Shown piece by piece: positions 26,681-56,336 of a stretch of 64,000 nt of DNA. The DNA is taken from assembly GCA_002269645.1 (NCBI GenBank), contig NIVC01000941.1, positions 27,299-91,298 of the forward strand, given 5' to 3'. The notes beneath the pieces were generated by a model, which did no database searches, was not told the DNA's origin, and saw only the letters and a program-made list of their open reading frames with translations. The translations under genes and the position numbers were made by a program. Source of the DNA: Macrostomum lignano (taxonomy: Eukaryota). Position 1 is the first letter of the stretch. Each line of letters opens with the position of its first letter.

Positions 26681-27184
26681 ACCCTAGTACGAGTACGATT
26701 AAAACATGCTTGGACCAGACGCCAACGCAATTAACCATAATTTTTTAACAATGACCAACATAAGCAATAAATAACAAGAATAGTAAGTCACTATGCGAAT
26801 TGCTGCAAATCAGAATAATTTGATTAATACCGTTGATTATTCGTAAAAAGTACTTAATCTATTTATTCTTATAAGAAAATATAAAAAGGACAAACGGGCC
26901 GATCAGTACAAGCGAAAAAAGCTGCCGCAAAAAATAGAATAACACACAACGTACAGATCAATCAACTTGGAAAATATGAGCCTCAATTTATACTGAATTG
27001 CCCAGCACTCGAGAGTCAGGGCTCGCAGACCATGACTTGGGCTCCACAAAAGCACAGAACACGCTTGGCAATACTGCAGAGTATACGGAAAGTCATCCTC
27101 ATGAACTTATTGACCTTGCCCTGATCTTACCTTCTTTGCTTGTATTACCTTTCCTTCTGCAACTATAACTCCCCATTCACTCCT

Positions 27185-28088
27185 TCCCTCTGCCAGTCCG
27201 CCTCTCCCCAATTCACTCTCACTGCGTGCCTCTCCCTTCCCAATACACTCCCTGCCTCTCCCCAATTCACTCTCACTGCGTGCCTCTCCCTTCCCAATAC
27301 ACTCCCTGCCTCTCCCCAATTCACTCTCACTGCCTGCCTCTCCCTTCCCAATACACTCCCTGCCTCTCCCCAATTCACTCTCACTGCCTGCCTCTCCCTT
27401 CCCAATACACTCCCTGCCTCTCCCCAATTCACTCTCACTGCCTGCCTCTCCCTTCCCAATACACTCCCTGCCTCTCCCTTCCCAATTCACTCTCTCTGCC
27501 TGCCTCTCCCTTCCCAATTCACTCCCTACCTCTCCCCAATTCACTTTCTCTGCCTGCCTCTCCCTTCCCAATTCACTCCCTACCTCTCCCCAATTCACTC
27601 TTACTGCCTGCCTCTCCCTTCCCAATTCACTCCCTGCCTCTCCCCAATTCACTCTCACTGCGTGCCTCTCCCTTCCCAATTCACTCCCTGCCTCTCCCCA
27701 ATTCACTCTCACTGCGTGCCTCTCCCTTCCCAATTCACTCTCACTGCTTCTCCCTTCCCAATTCACTCTCACTGCTTCTCCCTTCCCAATTCACTCTCAC
27801 TGCCTGCTTCTCCCTTCCCAATTCACTCTCACTGCTTCTCCCTTCCCAATTCACTCTCACTGCTTCTCCCTTCCCAATTCACTCTCACTGCTTCTCCCTT
27901 CCCAATTCACTCTCACTGCTTCTCCCTTTCCAATTCACTCTCACTGCTTCTCCCTTCCCAATTCACTCTCACTGCTTCTCCCTTCCCAATTCACTCTCAC
28001 TGCTTCTCCCTTCCCAATTCACTCTCACTGCTTCTCCCTTCCCAATTCACTCTCACTGACTCTCCCTTCCCAATTCCCTGCCTCTCCT
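27185..28088. repeat. Composite pyrimidine-rich minisatellite built on CTCCCTTCCCAATTCACTCTCACTG-type units
   Basis: Mixed roughly 24-50-bp periods that change along the array. Confidence 0.9.
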
Positions 28089-28406
28089 AGGAGAGGAGAG
28101 AAGGAGGAGAGGAGAGGAGAGCAGAGGAGAGCAGAGGAGAGGAGAGAAGAGGAGAGGAGAGAAGAGGAGAGGAGAGGAGAGCAGAGCAGAGAGGAGAGGA
28201 GAGAAGAGGAGAGGAGAGGAGAGCAGAGCAGAGAGGAGAGGAGAGAAGAGGAGAGCAGAGGAGAGGAGAGCAGAGGAGAGGAGAGGAGAGGAGAGGAGAG
28301 CAGAGCAGAGAGGAGAGGAGAGAAGAGGAGAGCAGAGGAGAGGAGAGCAGAGGAGAGGAGAGAAGAGGAGAGGAGAGCAGAGGAGAGGAGAGGAGAGAAG
28401 AGGAGA
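28089..28406. repeat. Purine-rich (GGAGA)n-type array
   Basis: Direct reading. Confidence 0.95.
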
Positions 28407-29227
28407 GATTGTAGCGGCCGGATTGCTATTGTGAAGTTTCAAAGGACCCCCGAGGGCCGGTTAGCTCTGCGGACCGGAGCTAACCAACCCCTGTGTTAGG
28501 TGATCAGTTAATCTTATAAACCGCATTCACCCCAAATACTAAGCTCGACTTGAAAAAGAAAATGTCTCAAATGTCGTGCTCGAGATCCCGAGAGCGGAAG
28601 GTAGTTCAGCTGCTCTCCAATGTATCAAAGAGTCACAAGACAAAAAGTTGAAATAAACATGGTTAATTCGTTGAAAAAAACTAATCCCGTCTATTAGTTT
28701 TTGAGACTGAAAACCGTTTGAATTAATAAATGTAGCAGGCCACCTTGAAAACTGTAAATTTGTGCTACAAGATAGGCTATTGCCATGGGTCTCTAGACAG
28801 ATAGCTAAAAGCGTAAGGAAAGTGTTATTTTTTGCAAATTTCCCATTTTCGGCAGATTTCTCTGGTGACAGAAAGAAACAAATCCGGGCTTCTTCTGACG
28901 ATCTAAACTGAGACTTTAGTCTAACAAAGCGAGGCTACATATGCTCCCTATACAAATTCAGCACAAGTGATGTTAGACATAGGCTATGCCCGTATAAGCC
29001 AAATGGAGAATCAAAATGAGACGCAGCCAATCAATACGGGGCTGAACTGAAAGTAGCCAATTTATTTGGAAATTCGCGGCGATCCTATAAACGGATGCTC
29101 ACTTGATTTCAATAACTTGAGCGGCAGCTAGAATGGATGATCCGGTATTGACAGGGTCGGTCAGACGTTGACGGTCTTCTGTTGGAGTCGGTGGAGCCAT
29201 AACAGTGTCCAGTTCGGAACGGACTCA

Positions 29228-29648
29228 GCCTTTTACTCGCGTAGTCTATGGCTTTTACTCGCGTAGTCTATGGCTTTTACTCGTGTAGTCTATGGCTTTT
29301 ACTCGCGTAGCCTATGGCTTTTACTCGCGTAGTCTATGGCTTTTACTTGCGTAGCCTATGGCTTTTACTCGCGTAGCCTATGGCTTTTACTCGCGTAGCC
29401 TATGGCTTTTACTCGCGTAGTCTATGGCTTTTACTCGCGTAGTCTATGGCTTTTACTCGCGTAGTCTATGGCTTTTACTCGCGTAGTCTATGGCTTTTAC
29501 TCGCGTAGTCTATGGCTTTTACTCGCGTAGCCTATGGCTTTTACTCGCGTAGCCTATGGCTTTTACTCGCGTAGCCTATGGCTTTTACTCGCGTAGCCTA
29601 TGGCTTTTACTCGCGTAGTCTATGGCTCTTACTCGCGCAGTCTATAGC
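29228..29648. repeat. 22-bp minisatellite (TTTTACTCGCGTAGTCTATGGC) x~19
   Basis: Tandem units. Confidence 0.95.
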
Positions 29649-34355: not shown

Positions 34356-35797
34356 GGCTTCCTGGCAGGCTCAAGCAGTTCAACTGCTACTCAAAGTAAT
34401 TTTCAATGGAGTTGTTGACTTCACAAAGTGCGAGGCAAGCAGGCGCTTAATAAATGCATGGGGCTTCTCAACTCCGACTCCACCCTGTGCTGCAGGCCTT
34501 TATGTCCAGCGGTTGGTTGGTGCAGCGCCAACCTTTGTACTGTGTCAATTGGCTGCAATTTCAACAGCAGCAATAATGAGCCAATTAAAAGACTCTCAGC
34601 TATGGTAAGTATTTTTACTTTGCTATTTTACTTTTTTATCAGAGAAACTACCATAAGTACTATATAAAGGATATGTAAATGCAAGTATATTCTGAATAGA
34701 GTTAAAAGTCAAGAGCACACAGACCAAACATTTTTCAAATGCTAAGTCATCCCACTTTGGTCTCTCTCTCTCTCTCTCTCTTTTTGGGCCCTCTAATGGC
34801 CACTTAGACATCCTTAGGATTGACTTGATGATTACTAAGACAGGCTAAGCTAAAATAGTTTCATTGGTCAACATTTTTACCTTGAGTGTAACAACAGGTA
34901 AGATTTTGTCTGCCTGCACCTTTTGCTCGCGTTGGGTAACAAGGAATTGAACTCGAAGCACAGTATTTCTGGGCCCAGGCTGCTGCAGTCTATAGCCCAG
35001 CCAAGGCAATGGCCATTGCCTTTGGGCCCGAAGATGCAGGCGAGAGAAAATTAAAGCGAGTGCCTCCACTGTCTCTCCTTTTTATATAAAACACTGAAGA
35101 ACATGCGCGTGGGAATGAAAAGCTACATAGAATAAAATGCATTCTATGCAGCTCATATTGAGGGCCAGATAAAAAATCTAGCTAATGGCTATAGAACATG
35201 AAGAAAAGAAAGGGAAGAAAGAGAGAAAATAGGAAAAAGATAAGAGATGGGATGGGATTTAGGATAAGAAAAAAATGAGAGAAGATGAAAGAAGAAAAGA
35301 AAAAAAGAGAAAGAAAGTATGAGAATTAAGAAAAAAACTTGAGCAGGCTAGATTATTATTATAAAGTTTCAAAGGACCTAAAGGCTAGATAAAGTGATTT
35401 CATGACCCATGTTTGGCTTATAGACTACTAGAGTTTTATAAACTTTTTCTTTGGACCCAAAATAGAGACTAAGTTAGAGAATATACATTTGTATATTATA
35501 TATTTCTAATCAATTGATTTACAAAATTCAAATTTAATTGCTTTGGTCTGGAGTCTAGGCTCTAACTTTGAGCTCTCTTCTAGGACTTAAGTTGACATAT
35601 CTTTCTTGCTATAATGAATACAGTGACCATACTCCAGATCATGTAGTATATGCCAAAAATTTGGGAGTGCATTGGCCTTGTATGCCAAAAGTAGGCATGC
35701 ACAGTTGGCGTGCATCATTCCTAAGAAAATAGTGTGCATGCGCCATGCACACCTAGCGGGCACCAGAGACCAGAGAAAGGGTTGGAGCGGCACTGTG

Positions 35798-36268
35798 GCA
35801 TCATCAACCACCTGGTGGCTACTGGAGAGCGAGATCGGCTTTTGAGAAGTGAGTTCAAACCGAGTCTGGTAGCATTTAGCAAGATCATTAATTCACAGTT
35901 TTCCAAAAAATGCATGCCATTTCAGGTACTTCAACCCTCCCAAGAGCGAGCTGCCTAACTGCACCGATAAGCCTTTCCCTTACGCTCTCAACAACTGGAT
36001 ACCCCAAGAACCGAATATTTTCAACACTCGCCACGGTGCTCTTACCCTCAGCAACACTCTGGGGATCGCCGTCATCAACTTGGTTGGCTGTCTGCTCACT
36101 CTGCTGCTGGCATTGCTGGAGAAGGCCTGCATCAACCTCAGGCCGCGTTTGAATCAGTTAAGAGGCAACGCGTTAAAGGACTGGCGACGACACAGGGCTG
36201 GGACTGGTGAAGCTGCGCAAACAGCTGCCAAAAATCAGACAAAAGAGAAGATGGAGTCATACGTCTAA
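35798..36268 (+). pseudogene. iGluR-like B' relic: only the end of exon 9 and exon 10 remain
   Basis: Near-identical to 55890-56350 of gene B. Upstream 35150-35590 resembles 50120-50360, implying loss of about 5.5 kb containing exons 1-9. Confidence 0.85.
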
Positions 36269-37859
36269 CGCTTGAATTTTCACTTCTTCCATTATGAAGT
36301 CCAATGATTAATAAATCTGTAAATATTTGATTCACAGTTTATTCTTTTATACGAAAAACGAAAAGAAAAGATGGTTACTTATTGATCATGTGCCTCATTG
36401 ATTAAGCTGCTAGGGATGTCATGATCCCAGCTGGCTCAATTCAACTCAGATAATTTATTCGTTTAGTTGGACAATCCGACAATAATACTTTACCGATGCG
36501 AAGCGCCATATGACGTAAATTTTAATGCGATGCAAAGCAAGGAAATATTATTCTGCAAAAGTCGTTTAGACATTTCGGCCAAAGCAAGAAAGTGCCAATC
36601 GGTATTGTTTTTTTATTATGTCATGGCAACCCACGCCTGACCTATCCGTTAGTGAATTGTTATGACACTCTGACCCTTGCGTCACTGCTAAAGCTTCACG
36701 CAAGCATGGCTTTATCATTGACCCATTCTATTGTGTAAAGCTTTCTTAAGTTCCGAATCTTTCACGTGCTCCAACTTACGCACAAGATTTAAGGATCGTC
36801 TCAGAGTTCTTTAGTGCGTTCGGTGAAACTTTCGCCATGGCTTACAACTATGATCTAGTAAACTCGGTCAGCCAATCCAGTTAGTCCTCGTCCCGTAAAG
36901 TTTCGCTCCACTGTCCCAAATGAAGTAACACGGAATGCGAACTTACTGTACTGTCATTTGGCTCGCGTGGCCCAAGGAAGTGCACAATTGGGACGTTTCT
37001 GATGCTAATTTTTGTATCAATAAAGCGTTTTTAAATAGACAGTAGCCGCGCATATTCGCTTTGACTTACAAAAGATTCACCGAACGAAAATTTACGCCCA
37101 CGGCAAAAAAACCATACGATCACTTCACCAAAAAAATGTACGCCACAGTCTAATAACGCATTTACTAATACTTACGCAGGCGCACACGCATACGCACAGT
37201 GTGTACAGAGATATTGATTTTTTTGTCTGCAGGGTTTTGTTGTGCGTGCTGCGTCAGTAGGGTTTCCCCACCCCGGCCTTTCTCTCTCTCTCTCTCTCTC
37301 TCTTTGTGCCTCCGCCTCTCGCGCTGGGTTGGGCCGGTCGGTCGGGCTGGGGTTTGTGGGCTTAAGCCTCACCCTAGTCTGGCCGGCGGCCAGCTCAGGG
37401 CCGGTCTTGTGCGCGGGCCGGCTCAGTCGCCCCGCCCTTCCCGGCGGCTGGTGATTGGCTGGCCGGTTGGGTGAGGTGTACTGGCTGGGTCTGTCGGCTT
37501 GCCCCTCCCCCCTTTTTGTGCTATTTATACGTGCGCCCCGCCCCACCCCGTCCCGGGCCCTCCCCCTAACCTCGCTGGCTGTAGAAGAGTCCAAATAAAC
37601 GCGATCGCGGTACGCTGAGGCATTCACTGCGTTGTTGAATCTGCTCGAACCAAGTGTGAGTCTTCTTTTTTCTCTGGGGTGCCGCGCTGGGACTCGAACC
37701 TTTCTGGGACCGGCAGGTGAACCTTCGCCAGCCAAGTCATTCCGTGAACTCTCGCAGCACATCTAGGGCCGGTCTGGTGAACTTTCGTCGGCCGGGCCGT
37801 GGTGAACTCTCGCCGCGTTAGGGGCAATAAGCGGGACCTGGGTGTCTCCCAGCAAGGTA

Positions 37860-38000: not shown

Positions 38001-38990
38001 CGGTAGTGGTGCTGATTAATAAATATTGATCGAATGGTTTGGCAAGTCTGGCGTTCAGCCAGTCAGGATCGAGTATCAGTTTGAAAATTAATCCGCATCA
38101 ATGCTGAGTTGTCATTTAAGCCCACAACAGCACTTGCTCAACAATATATTATCATCCGTTTAAATCCACCCAATCCAATGGGTGGATATCCATCCAATGC
38201 TTGAGATGACTTGCTTTGGTACTGCGCTCTATGCAAATTTCTAAGCAGAATAACATGGGCGTGTGACAAATTATCGTGGTCGTGTGACAGACTGAATGAA
38301 AAATTACCCTGTTTAAAAGGAAAAACCATAAGCCAGGCTCGGCCCAGCTTTATTTGTACATTGGCTGGCCAATCGCTGTTAGCGGGGCTGGAGTGCTTCC
38401 CGCCGCATTGTGTTTGGGGCGGGCCCGTCGTGCATTGGTCTGGGGTTGGATGCGCCGCCAACTGGGCGGGAGTGGGTTTCTGTGAGGGGGCATTTTTAGC
38501 CCCTGCGACCGCCTCGCTCTGTCCCGCTTCGCTGGCTTGCGTGCGTTTTTTCTGCTTTTAGTCACCCCCTTACTTGCAGTCTCTGCAATTTCTATTTTCT
38601 TTTCACTTTCGTTTATATTTTACTTTTCCAAATCGCTTACATTAGCAAATATACTGGTGTTTCGTATGTTGCCCATATAGGGCGTTAGGATGTTTTTCGT
38701 GCTCTGCAAGTGTTGTCCTCTGCTCTCTCCCTCCGGCCGATCCGTCAATGTAAATTTAACTTTCTACTCTTTGCCTCGAGCGCGCTCGTTTGTTTAGAGC
38801 GCTTTCAAGCTCACAACTCATTGCCAAGCAAGTTGCCAAACTTTGAGATCATTGGCGAAGCGGGTCGTGATGCCTTCAAAGATATCTAAGGGTATTCGGA
38901 AATCTAGGGCATGTTTACATATACGAGTATATGTAAGGTGATACGAAACTTGAAACTCACTAAAATTGAAGCTTCCCAGACAGCGCAACG

Positions 38991-41900
38991 ATGCGACATC
39001 TTACTGTTTTGCAGCTGGGCTTTCTCATTCTGATTGCAGGCTGTAGCGGAACGCAGGCTCAGAGCAACAACATTACACTGGGTTCGTTCAATCTTGTCTA
39101 CTAATGACTCTCCTTGGTCCAGTGCCACAGTCTGTTCAAATGCAGATGAAGCTCGTATTCAATAAATTTTAAGTTACCAAAAATTTGAGCAAAGAAATTC
39201 ATCATGCCGCATGTGCGCTACTAATGAATTCCTTTCAGCCCTATTGTGGAATGAGGAGGGCACAGCCGCGATGGCGAAGGACTTATTCGAAAAACATTTC
39301 CGACCGGCCATTCTCGAGGCCTGCCCGTCAGCGCCCGGCATCAATCAAACCTCCGTTAATTTTGTGGAGATCATTCACAACAAGCTTATGGACATCCCGG
39401 CTGCTATGACCAGTAAGAAGCATTTATTGCTTTTATTAATCTCTAAAATTTCTAAGGCTATAATAGAAAACATCTACGAACCCATTATGTTACTCGGTTA
39501 GAATCCGTTGAGATATGAGATGATGATAGTGCGTACCTTCGTCAGTTTACCTGTCAGGTAAAAAAAAAATTAAGAAGGCGACGGTAACTGCCGAATTAAT
39601 TCAAATATGAGCGACGTCGAACCTCATCGATGCAAGTTCGATACAATGTTAATCGATGGACTTAATTAATTCGAGTAGGCATAAATTTAAACTTAGATAA
39701 AAAATTATTCTCCAAACTCAGACTTTGCCAGCCTTGCCAACTGCTTGTTCATCGGTGCCCACACTGAAGTATCGATGGTGCCGCTGTTTGCTCAGGCCAA
39801 CTTGTCGACCGGCCTGACCTCGGGCTCTGTTGCTGCCCGCCGCTATCCTCGCATGCGGCTGCACAAGGTGGCGCCGATCCCAGTGCCGCTGGTCTCGGAC
39901 GGAGTGTTGCGATCGCTTGTAATGTCTCTTGGCGCCAGCGAAGCAAAGCAAAGCCGCCTCAGCATCATTCTTGGCACCGGCTACGAAGCATTTCATGTTG
40001 AATTTTTTGCTACAAAGTTTCCAGGCTCGGTTCAGCTCTACCGGCTTAAGCCGGGTGCAGAATACGACCTTATTACAAGGCTCCAATTTAAAACGACCGA
40101 AACCTTTCTGCTTGCATGCAAACCAGAAGAAGCCGAGGTTTTCCTTTCTGTGGCCTTCATAAATCGGCTTCTGCATCCAACTTATCGTTGGTTTCTGTTC
40201 AACATGGTGAGACTAGATACTTTGTCTAGAAACAGTTTTCATATGTAAGGTACTGTATTTTTGAGTAGGAAAAAATAGTAGGGAAAATTGAAGACGAGTA
40301 ATACCCGTAGTGCATTTCTATGATAGGAACTAAATAGACAGCTTAAATCTGTTTGAAAAAACTATATTACTCGTACATTACGCATTTTGTACGCATATTA
40401 GATTGACCTTGTATTTGTAGCTCCTGGTAGAGAGAAACAACTTCGGTGGCTACGTGATTGTGTCCAAGAATATCACATCAATGGAGTTCGGCCCAATATC
40501 CACTGCTATCAAAAACGGCCTAACTACGACGCGATCAGTTTACCTGTTTGATCTCTTGACTGTTTGGTCAGTTTACTTAAAAAACATTCTTTGTAACGAG
40601 GTGAGAGGCCACATTCGAGTTGTGCGAAATTTTATTAAGCTTTTTATGTCATTCAAAGCTTCAAAGTAATGGGATCATTAATAAATAGTTGTCATTAAAT
40701 AAATTCACTCAAAGAAACACATTCGCAATGCAGATTGACTGAAGAGATGCATGAAGCTATAAATATAGGCTTATTTCTACTGTGCTTCAATAGCATTGTT
40801 ATTCATCACGAATAGTTTCTTCACTTATTTTAGGCATCCAGAGTGAACAGAACTGTTGAAGGCCTGACCGGTTCTTTTAGCTTGGGCCCGGACGGCACGG
40901 TAACCAGGAAATTCTGGCGGATGCACTTTTACAAAGGACTCGGCGATCAGCGTGAACGGGTGAGGCCTCCATTGTTGCAGTGTTTTCTAATCGTGTCAAA
41001 CTTGTTGCGATTTTGTTTTTCTACGAGATCCTCTTTGAAATTGTACCCCAGCTCGGATATCGTGCTGGGATTTCTGACGCTTATCAATTTCAAAATGAAT
41101 TTCAAAAGCGTGTCACTCTCCCTAAGATCGGCAACTGGTCCAGTTCTGGAGACTTCTTCTTCCTCCCGGCAACGCCGAGAATACCGACTGATGAGGTGTT
41201 GAAGCAAGAGCTCAACTTGAACGTGTTCCGAGTAGTTACTGTACTGGTGGGTTTTCCAGAAACAGTTAACTCTTCCTTCAACAACTAGTTGAAGACGCTG
41301 CATAATTTCTCGTCTAACAAAACTACTTCTTCATTTCAGTCACCTCCGTTTGTGCAGTTCAGAAAGGGCTACGAGAATCGGACTGACGTACCGCTCTACA
41401 ACCGCCTAGAAGGGTTTGCGGTGGACATGTGCAAGAAGATACTGATGAAAATGTCGGTAAGTTTAAACTTTAACTTGTCGATAACTCTACCTTAACATTT
41501 TTGTGTAGAGGGTTTTAAACAGATTTTTAAAATGCAAATTCCCAGAAGACCAGTCACTATCCTAATCATATATTTCCCTCACTTCTTTAAATAAAAGGCC
41601 ACCAAAATATTGCGTTGAGGAGAGAAGATAGTGAAAACCAGTTCAAAGACGATAGGAAATGCGTCAGCTAGATAGTCAACTTACATGCTCTGCAATAATC
41701 GCGGTAAGAAACAACTGACCCCTTTCCTTCAGCTGAACTCCGTTGAATTCTTTCTACAACCTGATGGTATCTTCGGCTCCTACGATCCAGTCAAAGGATG
41801 GAGTGGCATGGTAGCCACTCTCATGCTAAATGATGCCGACATGGCCTGCGCTTCAATGTCCGACACGGAGCTGCGCCGTGGCGTTGTCAAATTTACGCAG

Positions 41901-43422
41901 CCCATCTTATTCAACCAACTGTCCATCCTGTACTCGAAGCCAGAGGTCAATCCAGTTGAGCTACTATTTGAGTTTCTCTCTCCGCTACACCTGTACACCT
42001 GGCTGGCCTTGCTCGGTTCCGGCTTCGCGTCGGGGCTGGTGCTGGCGGTGCTGCATCGAATTAGCAGGAACGAACAACGGCTCAGCTTGTACGAAGCGAT
42101 CTACGTCGCATTGGGCACGATGATCCAGGGCGTGAAGACAGCGACACCGGATCGTCCGTCTGCAAAGCTAGTGAGAAAAAAACCGTAGAAAATAAAGTGC
42201 ACCGTTTCTAACAAGCGCCAATACTGTAGGAGGCACGCACTCCTACTCACAATCAAAAAGGATTTACGGCGGCCCAGACTTTTCAATTGTCAGACATGTA
42301 GCTCGCACACTGTCTGTGCTTTGGGGGGTTGATCCTCATGGGTATGAATCGCACGGAACATTTGCAATTTTCGCGAAAAGCCGTAAATGAATGTGGCCAA
42401 ACATGGAATCCAACCAGGGTTCGTAGCGCGAGGGTCAGGGGTCGTACCGCTGAGCTTCTCTGCCTCCGAACAGTAGTTAATATTAGAGTAAATTTCTTTC
42501 TCGCATTCGATTTTGGCAGGTGACAGTGGTTTTCTGGCTGTTTGTGTTCCTCTTCTTGATTATCTATGTGTCCAACTATGCAGTCAAGCGGACCCTGAAG
42601 CACATCCAAACGGAGATCAGGGGACTGGAAAGCCTGCAAATACAGGAGGCGTATGAATACGGTACGCTGTACGACTCTGTGTACTTGGGCTTCATGAAGA
42701 AATCAATTGATCCGCTGGTGTCAACGACCTACCAGTACATCGCCGACAACCCGGAGCGCACTCAGCCGCGGAACATCAGCCAGGCACTTAGCCTCGTCAA
42801 TACTGGCAAATTTGCCTTCCTCTATAGCAACGTTTTGAATGAGTACTACGCTAAGATGGGTTGTGGCCTTAAAGTAGTGGGCAGCTTCGGACAAGAAACG
42901 ATGAATTTGGGTCTACCAAGCAGTATAGAATATGATGATTTGATCAATAAGATCATTGACCGACTAATCAGCAGTGGAGAGCGAGACCAGCTCTACAAAA
43001 AGTGAGTCGAATTCGCCTTTATTGAAGACGGAGACAGCTCAGGATTGAATCAGTACATAAAATCAGAGTTACCTTTTTCTAAATTCCTTGCTTGCAGGTA
43101 CGCAAATCCGCCCGAAAGCGATCTGCCTGACTGCACGAACAAGACTCTACCGTACGCCATTCGCGATTGGATTCCAAAAGAGTCTGAAAACGTTGGCACC
43201 CGACGAAGCGCTGTGAACCTCAACCACACACTCGGAATTACGATTATTAATTTGGTGGGCTGTCTGCTGACTCTACTGTTGGCTGCCCTGGAGTTGGCCT
43301 TTCAAACCTACAGGGAGCGACTGCGCAGGCTTCGGGATGACATGTTGAAGGACCTGAGCCTCCGCATGGAGTCTGCCAATGCAGCCGCATCTGGCGATGA
43401 TCTGATGGAGTCAAACGTTTAA
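38991..43422 (+). CDS. Divergent ionotropic glutamate receptor/IR-like subunit A1, join(38991..39081,39239..39412,39722..40206,40421..40600,40834..40959,41127..41246,41340..41456,41733..42170,42520..43001,43098..43422), 845 aa
   Basis: Signal peptide MRHLTVLQLGFLILIAG, ATD-sized N-terminus ending GLTGSF/IGNW, S1 (EGFAVDM, DGIFG, WSGMVATL, SMSDTELRRGVVKFTQP), M1, P-loop LGTMIQG, M3 YVSNYAV, S2 YGTL..GKFAFL..NEY, M4, C-terminal ESNV. Exon phases sum to 2538 nt. Confidence 0.85.
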
Positions 43423-44402
43423 TCCGTGTTGTATCGGACTGCAGTTTGATACGTCAGTTGAAAACAATTTTCCAACTGTGTCAGCGGTGGAGGGAAAACA
43501 AAAGTTGATTGATTGAAAAAACTTTTCATCATATTTAATTTCAATCAATCAACTCTCTTTAACAACTTTTGAATATTTACTCAGTCTATAATCAGTGTCC
43601 TTCAAAAGAATAACGTATCTGTACATGGTACAATGAGATGTAACCATCGTTAACTAAACTGGGAGTCAATCCCTACATATATAATTCCTGCAACAAGATG
43701 TCCAGTCGTGAGGCTCGAGTTAATTTTTCCAAAGGCGCAGCACGGAGAGCACGAGGAGCTTAGCTGATCTCAGTTCATCCAACAATATTCAGAGACCTAC
43801 GGAGTGTCAGAACGTGGCAGGTCAGCAGACACTCAACTGTGGTTGTCTCTGAACTTTTTGATCTAGCCATAAATTGCGCTATTCTTAACACCTTCATCTG
43901 ATTGGACTTTTCAGAGATGACCTGCAATTTAACCAGCTCGTATTCGTATTCTTTCATTCCTCCACCCCGGGAACAGCGGCAGGCACAAATATTTTCTATG
44001 CCTCATTTTTCGGCTAAAAAGTTAATTTCGAACGATACCAATCAACAAAGTACGGTAAATCAGCATTTAGAATTCCAACTTCTGCTCCTGAAAAACATTA
44101 TACCATTACGAGCGTATACGAGCTACTTTGTTCCAATTTTTTTTTTAAATTATGAAATATTCAATTAATACAGGTATTTACTGTAATACGTACTGTAATA
44201 TGTACTGTAATACAGTACTGTCAGGTATTTTTGTGTCCAATCGGCGTTTGCTGATTGGTTGTAAACACCCACCCCAAGTGCACCCCTCCGCCGTGAGGTT
44301 TATATCACCTAGCTTTACTCAGCCTGCCTCACCTTTCTCGCGCTGCATGAAATTTTTTTTATCGTACGGAGTAGCGTGAGTGCTGCCTAGGCTGCAACTG
44401 CA

Positions 44403-45476
44403 ATGGCCGAGATTTTAATTGACCAAATGACTGCAAGGCAGCTTAGAGACCGTCTACGCCAACTGGGACTGCCCAGTGGCGGTCGCAAGCGAGAGTTGCA
44501 AGTCAGACTGGAACAAGCCAGTTTCTCAAATCAAGCCAAGCGACGTGGACGGCCAACAGCCACTCACTCGAGCGAAATCGACCGAGTCAGCACCAGCAGC
44601 AGCGACGACGATGAGGAAGCGACCCTGGACGAGGCTGGCGCCCCGCAGGGCACCGACGATCTGGACCAGAGGATCGCCCGTCAGGAGAAGCTGCTTCGGC
44701 TGAGGACTCTTCAACGCCAGACTGCTGAGATCGAGGCTGAGCTGGAGAACAAGCCTGGCCAACAGAGCCGTAAGTTGCGGACCCCCTTGCCGATTGACCG
44801 GTCCCCTGCTGCCCATGAGCCGGAGCTGGGACTGCCAGACCTGGGCCCTCAAGGCCTCTACAGCACTTCTGCCAGGCCGTCGGGACCGTCAAAGCCCCTT
44901 CTGGTAAAGGACTTTATCAACCGTGATGGCGAGGAGCCTGCCTCTGGCGAGAAGTCCAGAGTCCGGACTGAGCAGATCTCGGCGGGTCAGTGGGTAGCAG
45001 GCAGCAACCGAATCCTGCTGAAACTCCTCGACGAGGGGTCCTTGGTCACCGTTAAGGATGGCGCGGTGGATCTTGAACAGCTGAAGGCCTACGTTCACTA
45101 CTGTGTACAGTTCGGCGAGTTTTTGCACCAGGGTTTCAGTCAGGCCGCCCTCAACTGTTACGATGAAGACTTCAGGATCCTGCAACATCAGTCTAGCGGC
45201 AGCTGGGAGCGGGAGTCGCTGCAGCTGCTATCCAAGCACATTCTGGCACCAAAGTCAAATCAGGGCGGCAACGCGATCTCCTAGCGCACCAATTTCAAGC
45301 CCAGTAGGCCAAAGCAGCAGCTGTCCGGCTTCGTCGGCCCGATCGATCCTGAGGGGCGGGAGCTGTGCGTGAAGTTCAACCGCAACGGCTGCCTACGGCG
45401 CGACTGCAAGTTCAGGCACATCTGCTCCGCCTGCTACGAGGCGCGCCCGCGCCAGTTCTGCACTTCAAAAAACTAG
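44403..45476 (+). CDS. ORF1 gag-like protein with N-terminal SAP domain and C-terminal Cys/His knuckle, interrupted by an in-frame TAG at 45282-45284
   Basis: MTARQLRDRLRQLGLPSGGRKRELQVRL fits the SAP consensus. After the TAG the same frame continues into CVKFNRNGCLRRDCKFRHICSAC..FC and stops at 45474-45476. Confidence 0.75.
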
Positions 45477-47200
45477 ATCGCGGCCGGCCGGGGGGCTCAA
45501 CTGGCAGCGCAGCTGCCCCGGCGGAAGCCAAAGTCGAACCCCCGCTGCCCTCCGGCTGGCCCTGTCCCAAGCCCCTCGAGTCCGTTGCTTTCTCATCCGA
45601 CCTCGCCACAGCCGCCTGGGAAGCTGAGCTGACTGACGATCCTGACCGCGAATTCCTGCTGAATGGCATCCGCAACGGTTTCCAACTCACCTGCCCTGAC
45701 CCGTCAGAAAGAGCCTCAACTATGTCAGAAACCCAGAACTACCTATCAGTCAACAGTTACCGGCAGCTGGTCGAGCAGCAGGTGCGAGAGGAAGTCCTTA
45801 ATGGCCGCTACGTTCAAGTCAGTAACAAACCGGAGGTCATCAGCGCCCTTGGCGCCATTCCGAAGGGTAACAACAAGATTCGACTCATCCACGACTGCTC
45901 TAACCCTCCGGGTCTCTCCCTAAACAGCCGATTTTCTTCCGACTACCGAATCAAGTTCGAGACCGTCAGTCACTTCACCGCCAAGCTGCAGCCCGGTTGG
46001 TTCATGGCCAAAGTCGACCTCGCCAATGCCTACCGGAGTGTCGGCATCAGCCCGCACGATTTTCGGCTCACCGGCTTGAAGTGGAAATTCAGCGACCAGC
46101 GCAGCGACTCGTACATCTGCGACACGCGGCTCCCCTTTGGCGCTGCTGCCTCCGTAGAAGTTTTCCACCGCCTGAGCCAGGCCGTCAAGCGCATGATGCA
46201 GAGACGGGGCTTCAACGATATCGGCAGTTATCTCGACGACTTCGCCATAGCAGCCTCCAGCAAGGACGACTGCCAGCTCGCTCTCGACACCCTGCTCAAT
46301 CTGCTGCGGAAGCTTGGCTTCTCCATCAACTGGAGAAAGGTGGTGGCACCGTGCACCAGACTGGTCTACCTGGGCGTCCTCATCGACACCGTCAGCGGCC
46401 TGCTGGAGCTTCCGAACGACAAGATCGACGCCACCAAGTCTCAGCTACAGTCCGCGCTCTCTCGCAAGCGCATCACCAAGCGCCAACTCCAATCGCTCTG
46501 TGGTTGCATCAACTGGGTCTGCCAGGTGGTCCGCATCGGGAGGTGCTTCCTGAGACCACTCCTGCTCGAGCTCAGCGACCTGAAGCAGCAGCGGCACAAA
46601 CTGCGCGTGCACAATGATCTCCGCGAGATCCTTAGCTGGTTGGACGCCTGCCTGGCCGCCTCCCCCAGCTGCAAAATCTGGCGTTCCCACGGGCCCAGCT
46701 GGGCCATCGAGTCCGACGCGTCCAATTGGGGCGGCTGCGGCATCATCCGCGGCCCAGGCATCACCAGCTGGCTCATCATGGACTGGCACTGCGACTCAAC
46801 CGAGATCGAGCCGCTGCACATCAACTTCAAGGAAAGTCTCGCGCCAGTGCTTACGGCCCTGCATTTCCAGCAGCAGCTGCAACCGGGCAGCCAGCTTGTG
46901 ATCTACTCTGACAGCACCGCCGCAGTCGGCGCCATCAACAAGGGCTCGTCGCCAAATCGGGTCGTCAACTCGGCTCTGCAACAGCTGATGCTCCTCGCTG
47001 CGCATCGCGACCTCTCCGTCCAGGCCTTCCACGTCCCTGGGACATTCCAGATCTTCGCTGATAGTGGCAGCCAAGCCGATGACATCAGAGAGCTGACAAA
47101 CTTCCTGCTCCGGCTCTTTGGCTCTGTTCACAACCTTAGCGAGCACACCCTCTCGCCAGCCACCTGCGAATTTCTCGCCGTACAGATCGCCCGCCTCAAG
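45474..47200 (+). CDS. ORF2 reverse transcriptase plus RNase H (end approximate; the open frame runs on to 47929 over the YR gene)
   Basis: RLIHDCS.P, KVDLANAYRSV, DTRLPFG, SYLDDF, YLGVLID (RT); ESDASNWG, HINFKES, YSDSTAAV, HVPG..FAD (DIRS-type RNase H). Confidence 0.9.
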
Positions 47201-48183
47201 TCCCGAGCGCGAACTTCAGCAAGCGCTACCGCGAGCTCTGCCACCTGGCCTTCGCTGAGACAACCGCGCGCTCTTACCGCTGCCAGATCGACTCCTGGAA
47301 GCGGTTCTGCAAGCAGATGCGCATCGACAGCACCAGACCGTCTCTGCAGCAGGTCGCGCACTACATCATCGCGCTGTCCGACCGCCTCTCCTCGCATGCC
47401 AGCGTCGGTGCGTACATTAACGCCGCAGACCTGCACTGCAAGCTCAAGACCGGCCGCGGCCTTCCTCGCGACCCCCGCATCGACCTGCTCCTCCGCGGTG
47501 TGCAGCGCAAACTCGCCAAGCCGCCGGTGCGCAAGGCGCCCATCACTCAGGGTGACCTCCTCAAACTGCGAGGAACCCTGCGCCTGCAGCAGCCTCAAGA
47601 TGCAGCCTTCTGGGCGGCGGTCCTGGTCGGATTCTGGGGCCTCCTGCGCCGCGCCAATCTGTGCTGCTCGAAACCGTTCCCACCAGCTGGCGAGGCGGTC
47701 ACCTGCGGCGACCTGCAAGTATCACCGGATCTGGCCATCCTGCACATTCGGCGCTCCAAGGCGAACCAGTTCCGCCAGCGAGTGCACCGCGTTGTCCTGC
47801 CGCGCCTGCGGCACGCGGCGCAGCACCCGCTCTGCCCGGTGGCAGCGCTGCTTCACCACCTGCGCATCAAACAGCCCGACCGCGCCGCTGCTGCCCACCT
47901 CTTCGCCTACCGAAGCAGCGGCGGCCTGACGCCTCTGACCGACACCCGGTTCTGTCGCCTGTTTCAGCACGTCGTCCACCGTGCCGGCCTGGCAGACCGG
48001 TCTCTGTCCCCTCACAGCCTTCGACGCGGCGGCGCCTCGCTGGCGTTCCGCGCCGGTGTGCCGCTGCCGGTCGTCAAGGCCCTGGGCGACTGGCGGAGCT
48101 CGGCGGTTGAGGTGTACCTGGGGCTGGAGAAGGGCTTCGACCTCCAGCTGGCGGCTGTTCGCAAACTGTCTCAATGCCTATAA
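47140..48183 (+). CDS. ORF3 tyrosine recombinase
   Basis: N-terminal AFAETTARSY..WKRFC, FWGLLRRANL (Arg), IRRSKANQ (Lys), CPV, HSLRRGGAS (HxxR), GDWRSSAVEVY (Trp/Tyr). The frame is open from 47140; the first ATG is at 47317. Confidence 0.9.
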   Translation, partial: RAHPLASHLRISRRTDRPPQVPSANFSKRYRELCHLAFAETTARSYRCQIDSWKRFCKQMRIDSTRPSLQQVAHYIIALSDRLSSHASVGAYINAADLHCKLKTGRGLPRDPRIDLLLRGVQRKLAKPPVRKAPITQGDLLKLRGTLRLQQPQDAAFWAAVLVGFWGLLRRANLCCSKPFPPAGEAVTCGDLQVSPDLAILHIRRSKANQFRQRVHRVVLPRLRHAAQHPLCPVAALLHHLRIKQPDRAAAAHLFAYRSSGGLTPLTDTRFCRLFQHVVHRAGLADRSLSPHSLRRGGASLAFRAGVPLPVVKALGDWRSSAVEVYLGLEKGFDLQLAAVRKLSQCL

Positions 48184-48779: not shown

Positions 48780-49969
48780 ATGCTGTCTCTAATCATCGTG
48801 CTGCTGCTTCTCTGCAGCAATGGAATTCGCGTCAGTGGAGAAAACTTCACTTTAGGTAAGACGAATTAAAGAATCAATACGCGCTCGTGGTTTACGAACA
48901 GATTAATTATCTGAAGAAAATAAACTGCTAATCGATTTTCCCTTCAGGCATCAGTTTCAGTTGCAATAGGAAAACTTAAACTTAAACTTAAAAACTTAAA
49001 AAGCAAAAACAAAAAATGATAATCCAATTTTTTTTCTTTTTCTTTTTCTTTTTTTCTTCAAGCAGAACCACTGCTTGAAGAGGGGGAGATTTATTGAGCG
49101 TACTTGCCCCAAGCTGGACCGGTGTACACCCAGCGGTGAAGAGTTTAAGAGTGGTTATTAGTCATTCAAAAACTCCCACTTCTAGACAATGGGGAACAAG
49201 TTCCCTAGGTATTATGCAAAATCAAATAACTCTTACTGGAGCGGCTCCTCTTGTAACTTGTTAGCAGGCTGGCCTTGTATGGTACGGCTCGTAGAGACGA
49301 CTGGCTTCAGTGAATTGTCTCCGGGAGTCCCTAACTTTATCTGTGGGTCGACAAAAAGCGACAGCGACAGCGAATCAGAAGTCTTTACAGTGTCCTAGAG
49401 CTCGGAATTAACAATAGAACGTGCGCCCTTAATGAGCAATTGAATTCTCTGAGTTTCTGCAATACTCGTAGGTCCTCCTGAAGGGCGTCTTCTTCGTTAC
49501 GTCCGAAACGTAACGGATAACTCAACTCAATCAATAGATCCTCTAGAAATCTATCCTAGGAAATAATTAAGGGGTCTTTCTCAAGTGTGTCGACAAAAAA
49601 CGGCTCTCGTAGACTTAATCAATCAGCTTATTGACGCTAGCTAAATCCGTTAAATGCTTACCAATTGGACAGAGTTTCGTCCCTCAGAAATAGGTCTTCT
49701 TTGTTTGTTCTTCAGAGTCTTCCTTGAGGTTCATACCTTGCATGAGTTAGAAAGTACGCTTGCGAGTCTTCGATTAAGAATGTAGTCCTGTATTCTACGG
49801 ACTTTTCAGCACTGCTATGGAATGATCGGAGCGCAGCCGCAATTGTGCAGGACTTGTTCGACAGAAAATTCTGGCTATTCATAGCAGACACTTGTCCAGA
49901 AATAATCAGAACAAAATCAATCGATTTCAAGTTCGTGGAGACTCATGAACATTCCAACTGCTCTTGATA
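48780..49969 (+). pseudogene. iGluR-like paralog C relic: exon 1 (48780..48855) and frameshifted exon 2 (49810..49969)
   Basis: Exon 1 is MLSLIIVLLLLCSNGIRVSGENFTL plus a phase-1 GTAAG donor. Exon 2 is ALLWNDRSAAAIVQDLFDRKFW..CP..KFVE, homologous to ALLWNEGGSAAIANELFETKFW of gene B. It is 160 bp instead of 174 bp (14-bp deletion). No later exons were found. Confidence 0.75.
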
Positions 49970-51901: not shown

Positions 51902-54900
51902 ATGCAGCTGGTTGCTTTCACTTGGAGGATTCTCTCCCTGACACTGATAGTCGATGGCAGCTACGGGACCAACATCACATTCGGTAGGCTTGGTACCGGA
52001 GTGCTGAGCTCTGGGAACTAACTAACTTATCTTGTGTATTGTAAGTGCACCGTTACATGCACACCAATTTCTCTCATTCTCTTCGCTCTAACTGGCCATA
52101 CCCCAAAGCTTCCATGTCCATAGTAATTGTCATCACGTGACTCGGGAACTTAGAGAAAGCCAATGCGAAATCACAGCAGAAATCACAAAATACAAGGAAG
52201 TTCGATTCACTCGTTTAATTCCCAGATATTTCCCATATCCTTAGTTGATACAAGGACAACTTAATATATGTTACTTGAGTAGTCCTTGAGTTGATAGTCG
52301 CTCGTATGCGGCATACCTAGTTACTCTATATGTTGCTCGCAATCTCGGGTTCACCCACTGAATTCTGGCCCATGATTGTCAACCCATGGTTTACTCATAT
52401 GTGAGTGTAAATCAGCTTTATTTGCCTCCTGACCGAAATTCAGCGAAATTGACGACATTTCAAAAGTATTTTTGCAACCACGCTTTTTATACACTATTAA
52501 TTATATAAGACTTCCACAAAGTCAGAAGGCCGGTAAGCAAATGTCAGGAAAATAAACACAAACTGAAAAAAATAAACAACTCAATCACATCGCAAAAGTC
52601 AAATGAATCGCACAAACTACTCAACACTTGCTTTCAGCGCTACTGTGGAACGAAGGCGGCTCGGCTGCAATCGCTAATGAGCTCTTTGAGACCAAATTTT
52701 GGCCGGCCATTATGGAAGCCTGTCCGTCTGCTCCTGGCATTAATGACACTTTTATCGATTTTGTTGAAATTGTTCAAACGACGTTAATAAATATTCCGAT
52801 GGTTTTAGAAAGTACGTGGCGTAAGAAGGCATTTAATACTTGCACTTAAAATTAGCTTTGAATTTGCACCAAGCAAGATTGAATGCTGGCATTTAAATTT
52901 TTAAATAATATGACCAAAATAGATTTATTAACTTAATTTTGGCTCGATAATCGCCTCATTTTTATTTGACTCGGCATTCTTTTAATTGTTCAGACATCTC
53001 CAGTCTCGGCAACTGCTTGTTCATCGGTGCCCACGCAGACGTATCGACGGTACCGCTGTTTGCTCAGGCCAACCTGTCGACCGGCCTGACGCCGGACTCT
53101 ATCGCTGGTCGCCGCTACCCCCGCATGCGGCTGCTCGAGGTTGCGCCGATACCAATGCCGCTGGTCTCGGAGGTCATGTCGCGAGCACTCACGCTGTCTC
53201 TGGGCTCCGGCCTGGCCGAGGGCAGTCGGCTTAGCATCATTCTCGGAAGCGGTTACGAAATATCTCATTTTAAACTACTGGTTGTAAATTTTCCCGGCTC
53301 GGTAAAATTTTATCGACTTGTGCCAGGTGCAGAGCAGGAGCTGGTCAGCGTACTTCAGTTGGATCTGGCGAAGAACTTTCTTGTTGCGGCTAAGCATGTC
53401 GAAACAGATGCATTTATGGCAGCCGCGTTCAGTGGTCAGCTGTTGAATCCATCGCATCGCTGGTTCCTGTTCGATACGGTGAGAATGGATTGCTGCTTCT
53501 AGATAGCTAGGTGACATCAATAAGTAACGATTGTCTGTTCCCATATTTAGTTCAGTTTAGTTTAATTAGATAGTTTTTCAGGCGATTTGAGTACTGCCGA
53601 AAATCAATGTGACAGTCAACCCGCAGACAGCGAAGAGAGAAACAGTTATGGCCAGTCCACTGACCCCTGAACTCGGAAGGCACACATTTACACGGGGTGT
53701 ACAACGGCCCTGACTTTCTCATCGTCAATCATGTAACACATTGTGTCTTGGGGGTTGGCCCCAATGGGCTAGAATCACTATTTACCTCAAAGGAAAACGA
53801 AAATGGTTACTTTGCCAACATGCATCCAGAATGCGACCTAATGAGCAACAGGGAAAATCATATTTTTCTTACAGTTATTAGTCCAGAAAAATAACTTTGA
53901 CGGCTTTAAAGTAATTTCAAAGAACATCACGTCAATGGACTTCGGCCCAATATCCTCGCTCATCAGCAATGGTCTAAACTCAACGCAAGCCGTTTATCTG
54001 TTCGATCTTCTATCGATTTGGTCGGTGTATTTAAAGAATATTTTTTGTAACGAAGTAAGAGTTTTTTTAGTTTTTAATTTGTTTCTCCGAGCAAAGTTTT
54101 TAACTCATAGTTACGATGCATTATAATTTTCTCATCTAAGCCGACAGAAGTGAACACAACATTCACGGGAATGACCGGTTCGTACGATTTAGCTCCTGAC
54201 GGAACTGTCTCCAGACAGAACTGGTTCATGTACTTTTACAAAGGCCTCGGCGAACAGCGAGAACGGGTCAGACGCACTTTGATTTTTTCATTCGCAATAT
54301 TCTGAATAATTTTTATCACATAAAAGTGCTTAACAGGCATGAGAATACAAACCATTTTTATCCAAACCCAAAGATCGGCAATTGGTCAAGCGCTGGAGAG
54401 TTTCACTTTCAGCCGGCCTTGGTCAGAACTACAACAGATGAAATGCTGAAGCGGGAGCTAAACTTAAACGTGTTTAGAGTGGTCACCGTATTAGTACGTA
54501 CGAGCTAGATTCTTAGTACAGCTCTTTTCATAATTTGAATTCGAGAGTGTATACTTCACATATCTCGCCGTGATTTCCCGTTTCAGTCCAAACCGTACGT
54601 TCAGTTTAAGAAGGGCTACGAGAACCGGACCAACGTTAGTCTCTTCGATCGCTTAGAAGGATTTGCCATAGACATGTGCAAGAAGATCCTGGAAAACATG
54701 TCGGCAAGTAGCAATATCGGTGTATATTGGGATTTTTATGTTTTACAGGCATTTGTAATTAGCTCTTAGTGCTGGGTTTCGAAATAAATGAACTTCGTGA
54801 CGGAAGGTTCTCGAGTTTCATGTGCTATGCTACAGCTGGTCTGTCTGTAGATTCTGCAAACTGGCTACTTTCCATCCCGTAGACACAATGATAGGAGTTT

Positions 54901-56336
54901 ATTCAAGATCCTTTACTCGTACACACCAAACCAGTTGGAATCAGTGGAGATGTTTCTGCAACCGGACAATAGTTACGGCTCGTTCGACCAGAGAAAGGGC
55001 TGGAGCGGCATGGTGGCCACGCTCATGCAAGGCGGGGCAGGCCTGGCCTGTGCGCCGATGTCCGACACAGAGGAGCGGCTCGGCGTCATGAAGTTCACGC
55101 AGCCGATCAAATCCTACCAGCTGTCTATTCTGTACGCCAAGCCGGAGGCCAACCCGGTGAAGCTTATGTTCGAGTTCCTCTCGCCGCTGCATCTGTACAC
55201 TTGGCTTGCACTGATAGGCTCAGTTCTGGTCTCCGCCTTGGTTCTGGCTGTTTTGCATCAGCTCAGCAGGAACGAGCACAGTTTTAGCCTATACGAAACG
55301 GTCTTCATTTCCTTCGCTTCGCTGATCCAAGGCTTGACTGGCGTCACGCCAAATCGACCGTCGGCCCAGTTAGTGAGTACTCAGACGGTTGTAGTTTTAA
55401 ATGAGAAAGCGATCATTTTCATTCCCATTGTTCTTACGGGTTACTTAATTCATTCTTAGGTCACAGCGGTGTACTGGCTGTTTGCTTTTGTAATCTTAGT
55501 CGCCTACGTGACAAACTATGCCGCAAAGCGGACTTTGGAACGAGTCCAGTCGGAAATCACGGATTTAGACAGCCTCCCTGTGCAGGAAACCTACGAATAC
55601 GGTACTTTTTTCGGCTCTGTCTACCTAAGCCTCTTGAAAGGCTCCAACGATCCTGTCCAGCAGGCGGCCTTCAGCTACATCAGCAACAATCCGGAGCGCA
55701 GGCAGCCGCGGAGCGTTAGCCAGGCTCTGAGCATGGTCAGCGGCGGCAAGTTCGCTCTTATTTACAACTCCGTCATGAACGACTACAATGCCAAAATGAC
55801 GTGCAACTTTCATGTCGCCGGCAACTTCGGACTGGACAGTGCGATGTTGGGTCTGCCGGAGAGTGCCGAATATGACGATCTGATCAACCGCATCATCAAC
55901 CACCTGGTGGCTACTGGAGAGCGAGATCGGCTATTTGAGAAGTGAGTTTAAACCGAGTCTGGTAGCATTAATTCACAGTTTTCAAAAAAACGCATGCCAT
56001 TTCAGGTACTTCAACCCTCCCAAGAGCGAGCTGCCTAACTGCACCGATAAGCCTTTCCCTTACGCTCTCAACAACTGGATACCCCAAGAACCGAATATTT
56101 TCAACACTCGCCACGGTGCTCTTACCCTCAGCAACACTCTGGGGATCGCCGTCATCAACTTGGCTGGCTGTCTGCTCACTCTGCTGCTGGCATTGCTGGA
56201 GAAGGCCTGCATCAACCTCAGGCCGCGTTTGAATCAGTTAAAAGGCAACGCGTTAAAGGACTGGCGACGACACAGGGCTGGGACTGGTGAAGCTGTGCAA
56301 ACAGCTGCCCAAAAATCAGACAGAAGAGATGATTGA
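51902..56336 (+). CDS. Divergent iGluR/IR-like subunit B, join(51902..51983,52638..52811,52994..53478,53875..54054,54141..54266,54374..54493,54587..54703,54935..55372,55460..55941,56006..56336), 844 aa
   Basis: Internal exon sizes are identical to A1 and A2 (174, 485, 180, 126, 120, 117, 438, 482). Motifs: APMSDTEERLGVMKF, SLIQG, YVTNYAAK, YGTFFGSVY. Intron 7 needs a GC donor. Exon 1 is assigned by signal peptide plus NITF and phase. Confidence 0.82.

Follow-up and report, generated by a model that had tools for sequence, protein, structure and literature searches.

An ionotropic glutamate receptor cluster in Macrostomum lignano

A 64,000-nucleotide stretch of the genome of the flatworm Macrostomum lignano (contig NIVC01000941.1, positions 27,299 to 91,298 of the forward strand, assembly GCA_002269645.1; hereafter the window, whose positions are used throughout) carries three intact genes of the ionotropic glutamate receptor (iGluR) type, which we call A1, B and A2. 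We investigated which agonist contacts and gate residues are kept in these genes, which are lost, and how old the losses are. Two layers of change were observed: a rewritten channel gate that appears to be shared with other flatworms, and a ligand pocket whose amino-group anchor appears to have been lost recently, in A (A1 and A2) and B only.

Gene models were assembled from conservation between the paralogs and from splice signals. A1 (38991-43422, forward strand) consists of 10 exons (38991-39081, 39239-39412, 39722-40206, 40421-40600, 40834-40959, 41127-41246, 41340-41456, 41733-42170, 42520-43001 and 43098-43422) that encode 845 amino acids in an intact frame, and every intron is of the GT-AG type. 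Exon 8, with a CAG acceptor and a GTGAGA donor, encodes the later portion of S1, M1 and the M2 pore loop; exon 9, with a CAG acceptor and a GTGAGT donor, encodes M3 and most of S2; and exon 10 encodes the end of S2 with C750 (43132-43134), M4 and the C-terminal tail to the stop codon. The interval 41733-43001, which had been singled out in an earlier sequence-only reading of this DNA, coincides exactly with exons 8 and 9 plus the intervening intron. Residues 42-845 of the A1 model were identical to NCBI PAA74532.1 (hypothetical protein BOX15_Mlig034115g2, Macrostomum lignano), and every A1 splice junction is thus independently validated.

A2 (58266-62688, forward strand) arose by recent duplication of A1 and likewise encodes 845 amino acids in 10 exons of the same structure. 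DNA identity between the two (38757-43938 versus 58082-63214) increased along the gene, from 74% in the upstream region through 85% in exons 2-3 to 94-99% in the part that starts with exon 4, its introns among it, which suggests that gene conversion took place or that the duplication was staggered. B, a paralog 57% identical to A, was traced through exons 2-10 at 52638-56338 on the forward strand and matches UniRef A0A1I8J5F7 (P0002). A signal peptide (MLSLIIVLLLLCSNGIRVSGENFTL) with a phase-1 GTAAGA donor at 48780-48855, 3.8 kb upstream of exon 2, may be its exon 1. This assignment is tentative because an extra exon-2-like piece (LLWNDRSAAAIVQDLFDRKFW...) intervenes at 49812-49940, which may represent an alternative exon or else be left over from another paralog. 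One B intron is of the GC-AG type (donor TCG|GCAAGT at 54704), all other splice sites in A1, A2 and B being canonical, and the B C-terminal tail (…AAQKSDRRDD*, ~56300-56340) is frameshifted relative to the database copy and to an upstream remnant (…AAKNQTEEMIESYA).

The sequence-only reading had counted three genes; all three were found, and a fourth, degenerate B-like copy had been missed. This remnant (35161-36468, forward strand) lies upstream of A1, and only its last exon is recognizable. It gave a translated match at 35888-36265 (tblastn), its DNA is 89% identical to 55890-56550, and its pieces match the B 5' flank, exon 8 over 32 bp, and the last exon with the 3' flank, the rest being mostly deleted. 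Its position upstream of A1 shows that B and A were duplicated together, with B first.

A1, A2 and B are under purifying selection. The ratio of nonsynonymous to synonymous divergence (dN/dS, Nei-Gojobori) was 0.15 between A and B, at a saturated dS of ~1.8, and 0.40 between A1 and A2, at a dS of 0.051. S1, which bears the pocket arginine, was the most conserved domain, with 74% identity between A and B and 60% between A and Mlig005297, a sister paralog described below; the corresponding values for S2 were 56% and 35%. Pseudogene decay was ruled out by the intact open reading frames (ORFs) and the dN/dS values, and the view that these are decaying duplicates, with the lost contacts as neutral damage, is very improbable. 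Its support lies in the degenerate neighbor at 35161-36468, in the relatively high A1-A2 ratio and in the frameshifted C terminus of B. Against it stand the intact 10-exon ORFs of all three copies, whose splice sites are conserved, the A-B ratio, the conservation of S1, and the recurrence of identical unusual residues in at least five near-identical database copies.

Fold and ligand pocket of the encoded receptors

By domain, fold and disulfide, A1, A2 and B belong to the iGluR superfamily. Pfam PF10613 (Lig_chan-Glu_bd) and PF00060 (Lig_chan) matched A1 with 72 bits (5.6e-20) and 47 bits (2.7e-12) and B with 76 and 53.5 bits, the curated cut-offs being 30 and 30.8 bits, respectively. Some 380 residues, including the signal peptide, precede S1 in A1 and B, and in this N-terminal domain Pfam ANF_receptor was undetected even at E < 0.1. 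In a phmmer search of all PDB chains, the best matches to A1 were of GluK, GluA and GluD types, headed by GluK3 (111 bits), GluK2 (110) and GluA2 (109). An AlphaFold2 model was made for P0001, a near-identical database protein with the same key residues and an imperfect N-terminal gene model. Its mean predicted local distance difference test score was 83, with values above 90 in the ligand-binding domain (LBD), and helices were placed at P0001 residues 402-425, 434-446, 457-492 and 663-719, the last supporting the M4 assigned to exon 10. The top Foldseek matches of this model were full-length GluK2 and GluA2 (E ~1e-32 over ~720-750 columns, N-terminal domain included). The predicted architecture comprises an N-terminal domain, S1, M1, a re-entrant M2, M3, S2, M4 and a bilobed LBD. 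As to subfamily, the nearest non-flatworm relatives are annotated as AMPA-like or kainate-like.

We located the pocket residues in phmmer alignments to GluK3, GluK2, GluK5 and GluK1, which were ungapped around the sites, in a MAFFT alignment of 109 iGluRs (the flatworm clade plus 102 of the best representative matches, termed here the other iGluRs), and in the AlphaFold2 model. The equivalent of GluA2 R485, Arg in 99 of the 102 other iGluRs, is kept as R479 in A (TELRRG; 41874-41876 in A1) and R474 in B (TEERLG). GluA2 G653-S654-T655 is replaced by S-V-Y in A1, A2 and B (A1 residues 630-632, 42676-42684; B 55616-55624); the T655 column holds Thr in 69 of the other iGluRs and Tyr in none. E705 corresponds to Ser in A (S680, FLYSNVLNEY) and to Asn in B (N675, LIYNSVMNDY), and the preceding residue is Tyr in both, so that LE has become YS (Y679-S680, 42823-42828) or YN (Y674-N675, 55763-55768). 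This column is otherwise acidic in 101 of 102 sequences (Glu in 72, Asp in 29, Leu in one). The hinge residue Y732, Tyr in 85 and Phe in 12 of the other iGluRs, is Met in A (A1 M705, 42901-42903) and Ala in B. The T480 position is Ser in A and B (A1 S474), P478 is Ser in A (A1 S472) and kept in B, and the Y450 equivalent in A1 is F445. Both cysteines of the LBD disulfide are kept (A1 C692, 42862-42864, and C750); the first of these columns is Cys in 102 of 102 other iGluRs and the second is nearly invariant. A2 has the R, SVY, YS and M3 motif (IYVSNYAVK) of A1.

The retained arginine and disulfide cysteines and the S-V-Y and Ser/Asn replacements had all been proposed by hand alignment to GluA2 in the sequence-only reading, which allowed that a structure-based alignment might restore the Ser, Thr and Glu contacts. 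In our hands the phmmer, MAFFT and AlphaFold2 placements agreed at each of these sites, and the contacts were not restored with the AlphaFold2 model. phmmer aligned ASMSDTELRR of A1 with APLTIT.VRE of canonical iGluRs, SVY with G(S/A)T, and YSN with (L/M)E(S). In the model, SVY lies at the N terminus of a helix (alpha-F), Ser ends the strand just before a helix (beta10/alpha-I), and Arg lies in the short alpha-D. An alignment artefact was ruled out, since the HMMER alignments were ungapped at all sites and the AlphaFold2 secondary structure fell where expected.

Set against the 102 other iGluRs, the residue pattern of A and B is far from a chance departure. The remodelling affects the lower lobe and the hinge, the upper-lobe carboxylate anchor (Arg plus the Ser at the T480 site) being kept. 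The carboxylate-binding half of the site is intact and constrained; lost are the anchor for the amino group, the contacts to the gamma-carboxylate and the Tyr of the hinge. SVY, the Tyr before the lost acid, Arg and the T480-site Ser are identical in A and B despite a dS of ~1.8. We found no excess of pocket-specific divergence between A and B, with ~6 of 14 pocket positions differing, by eye and on the gene models, against 43% overall. The recent copies A1 and A2 do differ at the pocket edge, in residue 629 (the GluA2 S652 position, just before SVY), which is Asp in A1 (42673-42675) and Gly in A2 (61939-61941); both variants are present among the database copies.

The same residues bear on whether A and B still respond to amino acids. 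Mutations of the corresponding acid in GluN1 (D732S, D732N and D732A) lowered glycine potency 1,000- to 10,000-fold, and the site is Glu or Asp in 92% of 204 iGluR genes (bioRxiv 10.1101/2023.08.03.551817). The first alpha-F position is Gly in glutamate-selective receptors and usually Ser in receptors of other selectivities (PMC13648236). The potency loss with Ser or Asn in GluN1, the alpha-F Ser and the remodelled pocket together make glutamate an unlikely agonist, and the sequence-only proposal of a ligand other than glutamate is likely to be right as far as can be judged from these residues. A and B could instead be receptors for amino acids of the glycine, alanine, serine or gamma-aminobutyric acid type, with millimolar potency or with compensating amino-group contacts from the neighboring Asn/Ser, the hydroxyls of the new Tyr residues or Asp629 of A1. 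The alpha-F Ser, shared with glycine-selective and other non-glutamate iGluRs (PMC13648236), would fit such receptors, as would the intact Arg and Ser/Thr carboxylate contacts, the reduced but not abolished glycine responses of GluN1 D732S and D732N, and the resemblance of four Asp-bearing sister paralogs to ordinary small-amino-acid receptors. We nevertheless consider this unlikely. The contact set of amino-acid-gated iGluRs is incomplete in A and B, where Arg and Ser are present and the acidic E705 residue, near-universal both in our comparison and in the published survey, is replaced. Moreover, the hinge Tyr732 is gone in A, in B and in the four sister paralogs, Pro478 is gone in A though kept in B, and the lower lobe has gained two bulky Tyr residues.

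The M3 gate, the pore loop and flatworm relatives

The M3 motif, SYTANLAAF in canonical iGluRs, reads IYVSNYAVK in A (A1 42562-42588) and AYVTNYAAK in B (55502-55528), as had been described from the sequence, and was recovered in the same phmmer and MAFFT columns; over a longer span, SYTANLAAFLT corresponds to IYVSNYAVKRT in A1. Only three of nine residues match in A and four in B, with Tyr2, Asn5 and Ala7 kept. Ramos-Vicente et al. 2018 included only sequences with at least four of the nine SYTANLAAF residues; by that measure A would be excluded and B would be borderline. Among the 102 other iGluRs, the L620 column holds Leu in 93 and Tyr in two, the F623 column Phe in 90 and Lys in none, and the L624 column Leu in 96 and Arg in one; A and B have Tyr, Lys and Arg at these positions. 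The Ala at the Lurcher position is Val in A, not in B, and one sister paralog also has Val.

In the pore loop, the Gln of the Q/R site is kept (A1 Q563, 42126-42128; B Q558), also as previously noted, with MIQG versus MQQG aligned at the first Gln. A register shifted by one was ruled out, because the ungapped spacing from the upstream Gly to the downstream Pro fixes Q563. The +4 site, Asp or Glu in 88 of the 102 other iGluRs, is Thr in A (A1 T567, 42138-42140) and Gly in B. By GluA2 numbering, the pore-facing M3 positions should be T617 (Val in A1), A621 (kept), T625 (kept) and M629 (Ile), and the substitutions L620Y, A622V, F623K and L624R presumably point away from the pore axis. If so, the pore-facing side of M3 is kept or conservatively changed, which argues for a working gate over a permanent leak.

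To place these changes in time, relatives were collected with an exhaustive HMMER scan of 1.84 billion representative sequences. Only five close relatives were recovered, every one an M. lignano sequence: A1 itself, in its database copy P0151, and the four sister paralogs Mlig005297 (P0003), Mlig022707, Mlig015771 and Mlig025413. Below these the score fell from 244 to ~150 bits, the level at which the generic AMPA-like and kainate-like receptors of lophotrochozoans set in. The two generic matches with Tyr in the L620 column were both from cestodes (Taenia crassiceps and Hydatigera taeniaeformis), and a cestode family was recovered from Taenia, Echinococcus, Mesocestoides, Hydatigera and Anoplocephala. 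Word-indexed searches for the family gave two and three matches, and a cestode-seeded search gave 12. This cestode family, annotated as "Glutamate receptor U1 / kainate", and the four M. lignano paralogs are the closest true relatives of A and B, and all of them are uncharacterized. Mlig005297 and Mlig022707 lie tail to tail on M. lignano contig NIVC01002135.1 (L001 10001-17574, forward, and 19520-22087, reverse), and, judging by protein accessions that run consecutively, the two are paired likewise on three other contigs.

The four paralogs share an outer M3 of the form Y/F, V/I/C, a variable residue, then N-Y-A-(A/V)-x-R. The cestode family shares the Tyr of N-Y-A and has A/S at the eighth position, with the Arg two positions on in all members but Hydatigera P0074. 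Throughout the flatworm group the +4 acid is lost, the pore loop has the "QG" form, and both the gate alanine A7 and the Gln at the Q/R site are kept, A7 being invariant across the whole clade; a PP/xS motif after the filter is common to A and B, the cestode family and the other M. lignano paralogs. The pocket acid is distributed differently. It is kept at the E705 site by every member of the flatworm group save A and B, the M. lignano paralogs having IYDSA, IFDTT, IGDDL and ISDSL there and the cestodes LLDES. The codons at this site (GAC in Mlig005297, AAC in B and AGC in A) fit single-step changes. A neighbor-joining tree of 88 sequences (401 columns of the LBD and transmembrane domain, 100 bootstrap replicates) grouped A with B at 100, these with Mlig005297 at 99, the Macrostomum clade at 89, the cestode family at 91, and Macrostomum with the cestodes at 81.

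Since the acid is retained outside A and B and the M3 signature is found group-wide, the M3 remodelling is ancient and flatworm-wide, and the amino-group anchor was lost recently, in no other members than A and B. The M3 remodelling reported in the sequence-only reading is thus real, but it is not particular to these genes and is decoupled from the change in the pocket.

The sequence-only reading had also suggested that gating might be leaky. In GluN1, constitutive activity was obtained at D732 with Leu or Phe alone (bioRxiv 10.1101/2023.08.03.551817). In NMDA receptors A7 is the agonist-controlled gate, and bulky A8 substitutions leave the channel shut (PMC3434102). A natural case is AKDF19383 of Trichoplax adhaerens, a leak iGluR of non-NMDA type that has lost the same acid and kept Arg, as A and B have (bioRxiv 10.1101/2023.08.03.551817). 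AKDF19383 differs in carrying a large Tyr followed by Tyr at the site, together with a nearly canonical M3, whereas A and B have small polar Ser or Asn and a remodelled M3; the large hydrophobic residue at D732/E705 that typifies leak channels is absent from both. A and B might bind no agonist at all, either playing a modulatory or structural part in heteromers that they form with Asp-retaining paralogs or opening constitutively as leak channels like AKDF19383. This precedent, in which loss of the acid turned an iGluR into a glycine-inhibited leak channel, speaks for such a role, as does the Val at the Lurcher position in A. B and A were moreover duplicated as one unit, and the proximity of Mlig005297 and Mlig022707 to each other is likewise compatible with partner subunits. 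We judge this unlikely, because constitutive activity was obtained with Leu, Phe or Tyr and not with Ser or Asn, A7 is invariant, bulky A8 substitutions do not open NMDA receptors (PMC3434102), and the retention of SVY, Tyr and Arg between A and B argues that the pocket is still used. With A7 retained, we found no indication that A and B are leaky, and that part of the earlier proposal is weakly supported or contradicted.

Candidate ligand and channel properties

Compared with the AMPA and kainate receptors GluA2, GluK2 and GluK3, A and B share domain order, fold, Arg485, the LBD disulfide, the Q/R-site Gln and the M3 gate residues Tyr, Asn and A7. They differ in an identity of only ~22-27%, in SVY, in YS/YN, in Met or Ala for Y732, in Thr or Gly for the +4 Asp/Glu, and in an N-terminal domain that no longer matches Pfam ANF_receptor. 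The account we prefer, with a probability of about one half for the whole, is that A1, A2 and B encode working subunits from a strongly diverged, flatworm-specific branch of non-NMDA-type iGluRs that have undergone two layers of change and respond to a carboxylate other than glutamate. Their build would be three-layered: a diverged N-terminal domain, a bilobed LBD split by the channel, and a channel of M1, pore loop, M3 and M4. In the old layer, the outer M3 would have been rewritten and the +4 acid lost, with the Q/R-site Gln and A7 kept; in the recent layer, the Asp of the A/B lineage that anchors the alpha-amino group would have changed to Asn in B and then to Ser in A. A and B would still form ligand-gated cation channels, probably as A/B heteromers or together with Asp-retaining paralogs. 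The agonist would most likely be a small carboxylate held by Arg without a conventionally bound alpha-amino group. A +4 Asp is described in published work as contributing to polyamine block, and its absence would predict weak polyamine block and lower Ca2+ permeability.

A non-amino-acid carboxylate is a plausible ligand by analogy with the ionotropic receptors (IRs) of protostomes. The acid-sensing IR75a, IR84a, IR64a and IR31a are derived from iGluRs, have lost agonist contacts and retain Arg (PMC7882480), which makes them plausible as a functional analogy. Like IRs, which are defined by loss of at least one of the R, T and D/E contacts, A and B have lost two, with Tyr at the Thr site and Ser or Asn at the D/E site. 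Tuning IRs are without the N-terminal domain, whereas A and B keep ~380 residues before S1, and the clade of flatworm receptors to which A and B belong has an M3 signature of its own. Taken further, the analogy would mean that a free-living flatworm independently evolved IR-like chemoreceptors out of a flatworm-specific iGluR branch, in which carboxylic acids other than amino acids (candidates being short-chain, aromatic or hydroxy acids) gate A and B and are held by Arg in an aromatic-lined pocket, with the N-terminal domain and the rewritten M3 kept. We regard this as doubtful; if true, it would be a case of convergence with the acid-sensing IRs of arthropods.

Several points weigh against our preferred account. 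The idea of a non-amino-acid carboxylate ligand comes from the analogy with acid-sensing insect IRs. Ser or Asn in GluN1 lowers potency without abolishing it, which leaves room for a low-potency amino-acid receptor. The high conservation of S1 could stem from the dimer interface rather than from ligand binding. Finally, the tree is distance-based with long flatworm branches, where long-branch attraction is possible, and IR25a and IR8a are absent from it.

A DIRS-like retroelement (44403-48183; GC-rich, 55-63%) lies between A1 and B, with ORFs for a SAP domain (44403-45284), a reverse transcriptase (45365-47929) and a tyrosine-recombinase-like protein (47317-48183). A block of satellite and tandem repeats at 24436-29645, with periods of 159, 22/64, 46, 28/54, 5 and 22 bp, explains the strong swing in GC skew at 24-28 kb. 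Two rhodopsin-family seven-transmembrane ORFs, at 14422-15267 on the forward strand (7tm_1, E 6e-31) and at 19671-20801 on the reverse strand (7tm_1, E 2e-17), indicate that genes for G protein-coupled receptors share the neighborhood of the iGluR cluster. A 469-residue ORF on the reverse strand (10991-12400) has a TNP-like RNase H N-terminal domain and thus belongs to a mobile element of the transposase type.

The A and B sequences are already public as uncharacterized predictions. In the literature searched we found no paper that mentions these loci by locus tag or a flatworm-specific iGluR clade, and nothing relevant on flatworm iGluR phylogenies or flatworm IRs; the protein described in the Schistosoma mansoni "IR" paper is conventional iGluR-like. 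The iGluR surveys and the review consulted here do not mention flatworms; since surveys filter out poor SYTANLAAF matches and omit flatworms, a flatworm-wide branch with a rewritten M3 would have been overlooked. New here are the age of the M3 change, which appears flatworm-wide, and the recency of the pocket change, apparently restricted to A and B. As the old change in the gate and the recent one in the pocket are separate, either could be tested without the other, and A and B set against their sister paralogs form a natural experiment at the single most conserved amino-group contact. The payoff would be moderate, because IRs, delta receptors and the Trichoplax leak channel already provide well-known cases of lost contact residues. 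M. lignano is tractable by RNA interference and transgenesis, so that ligand, cell type and behavior can be addressed, and the outcome would show whether iGluRs were recruited to IR-like chemosensory roles on more than one occasion.

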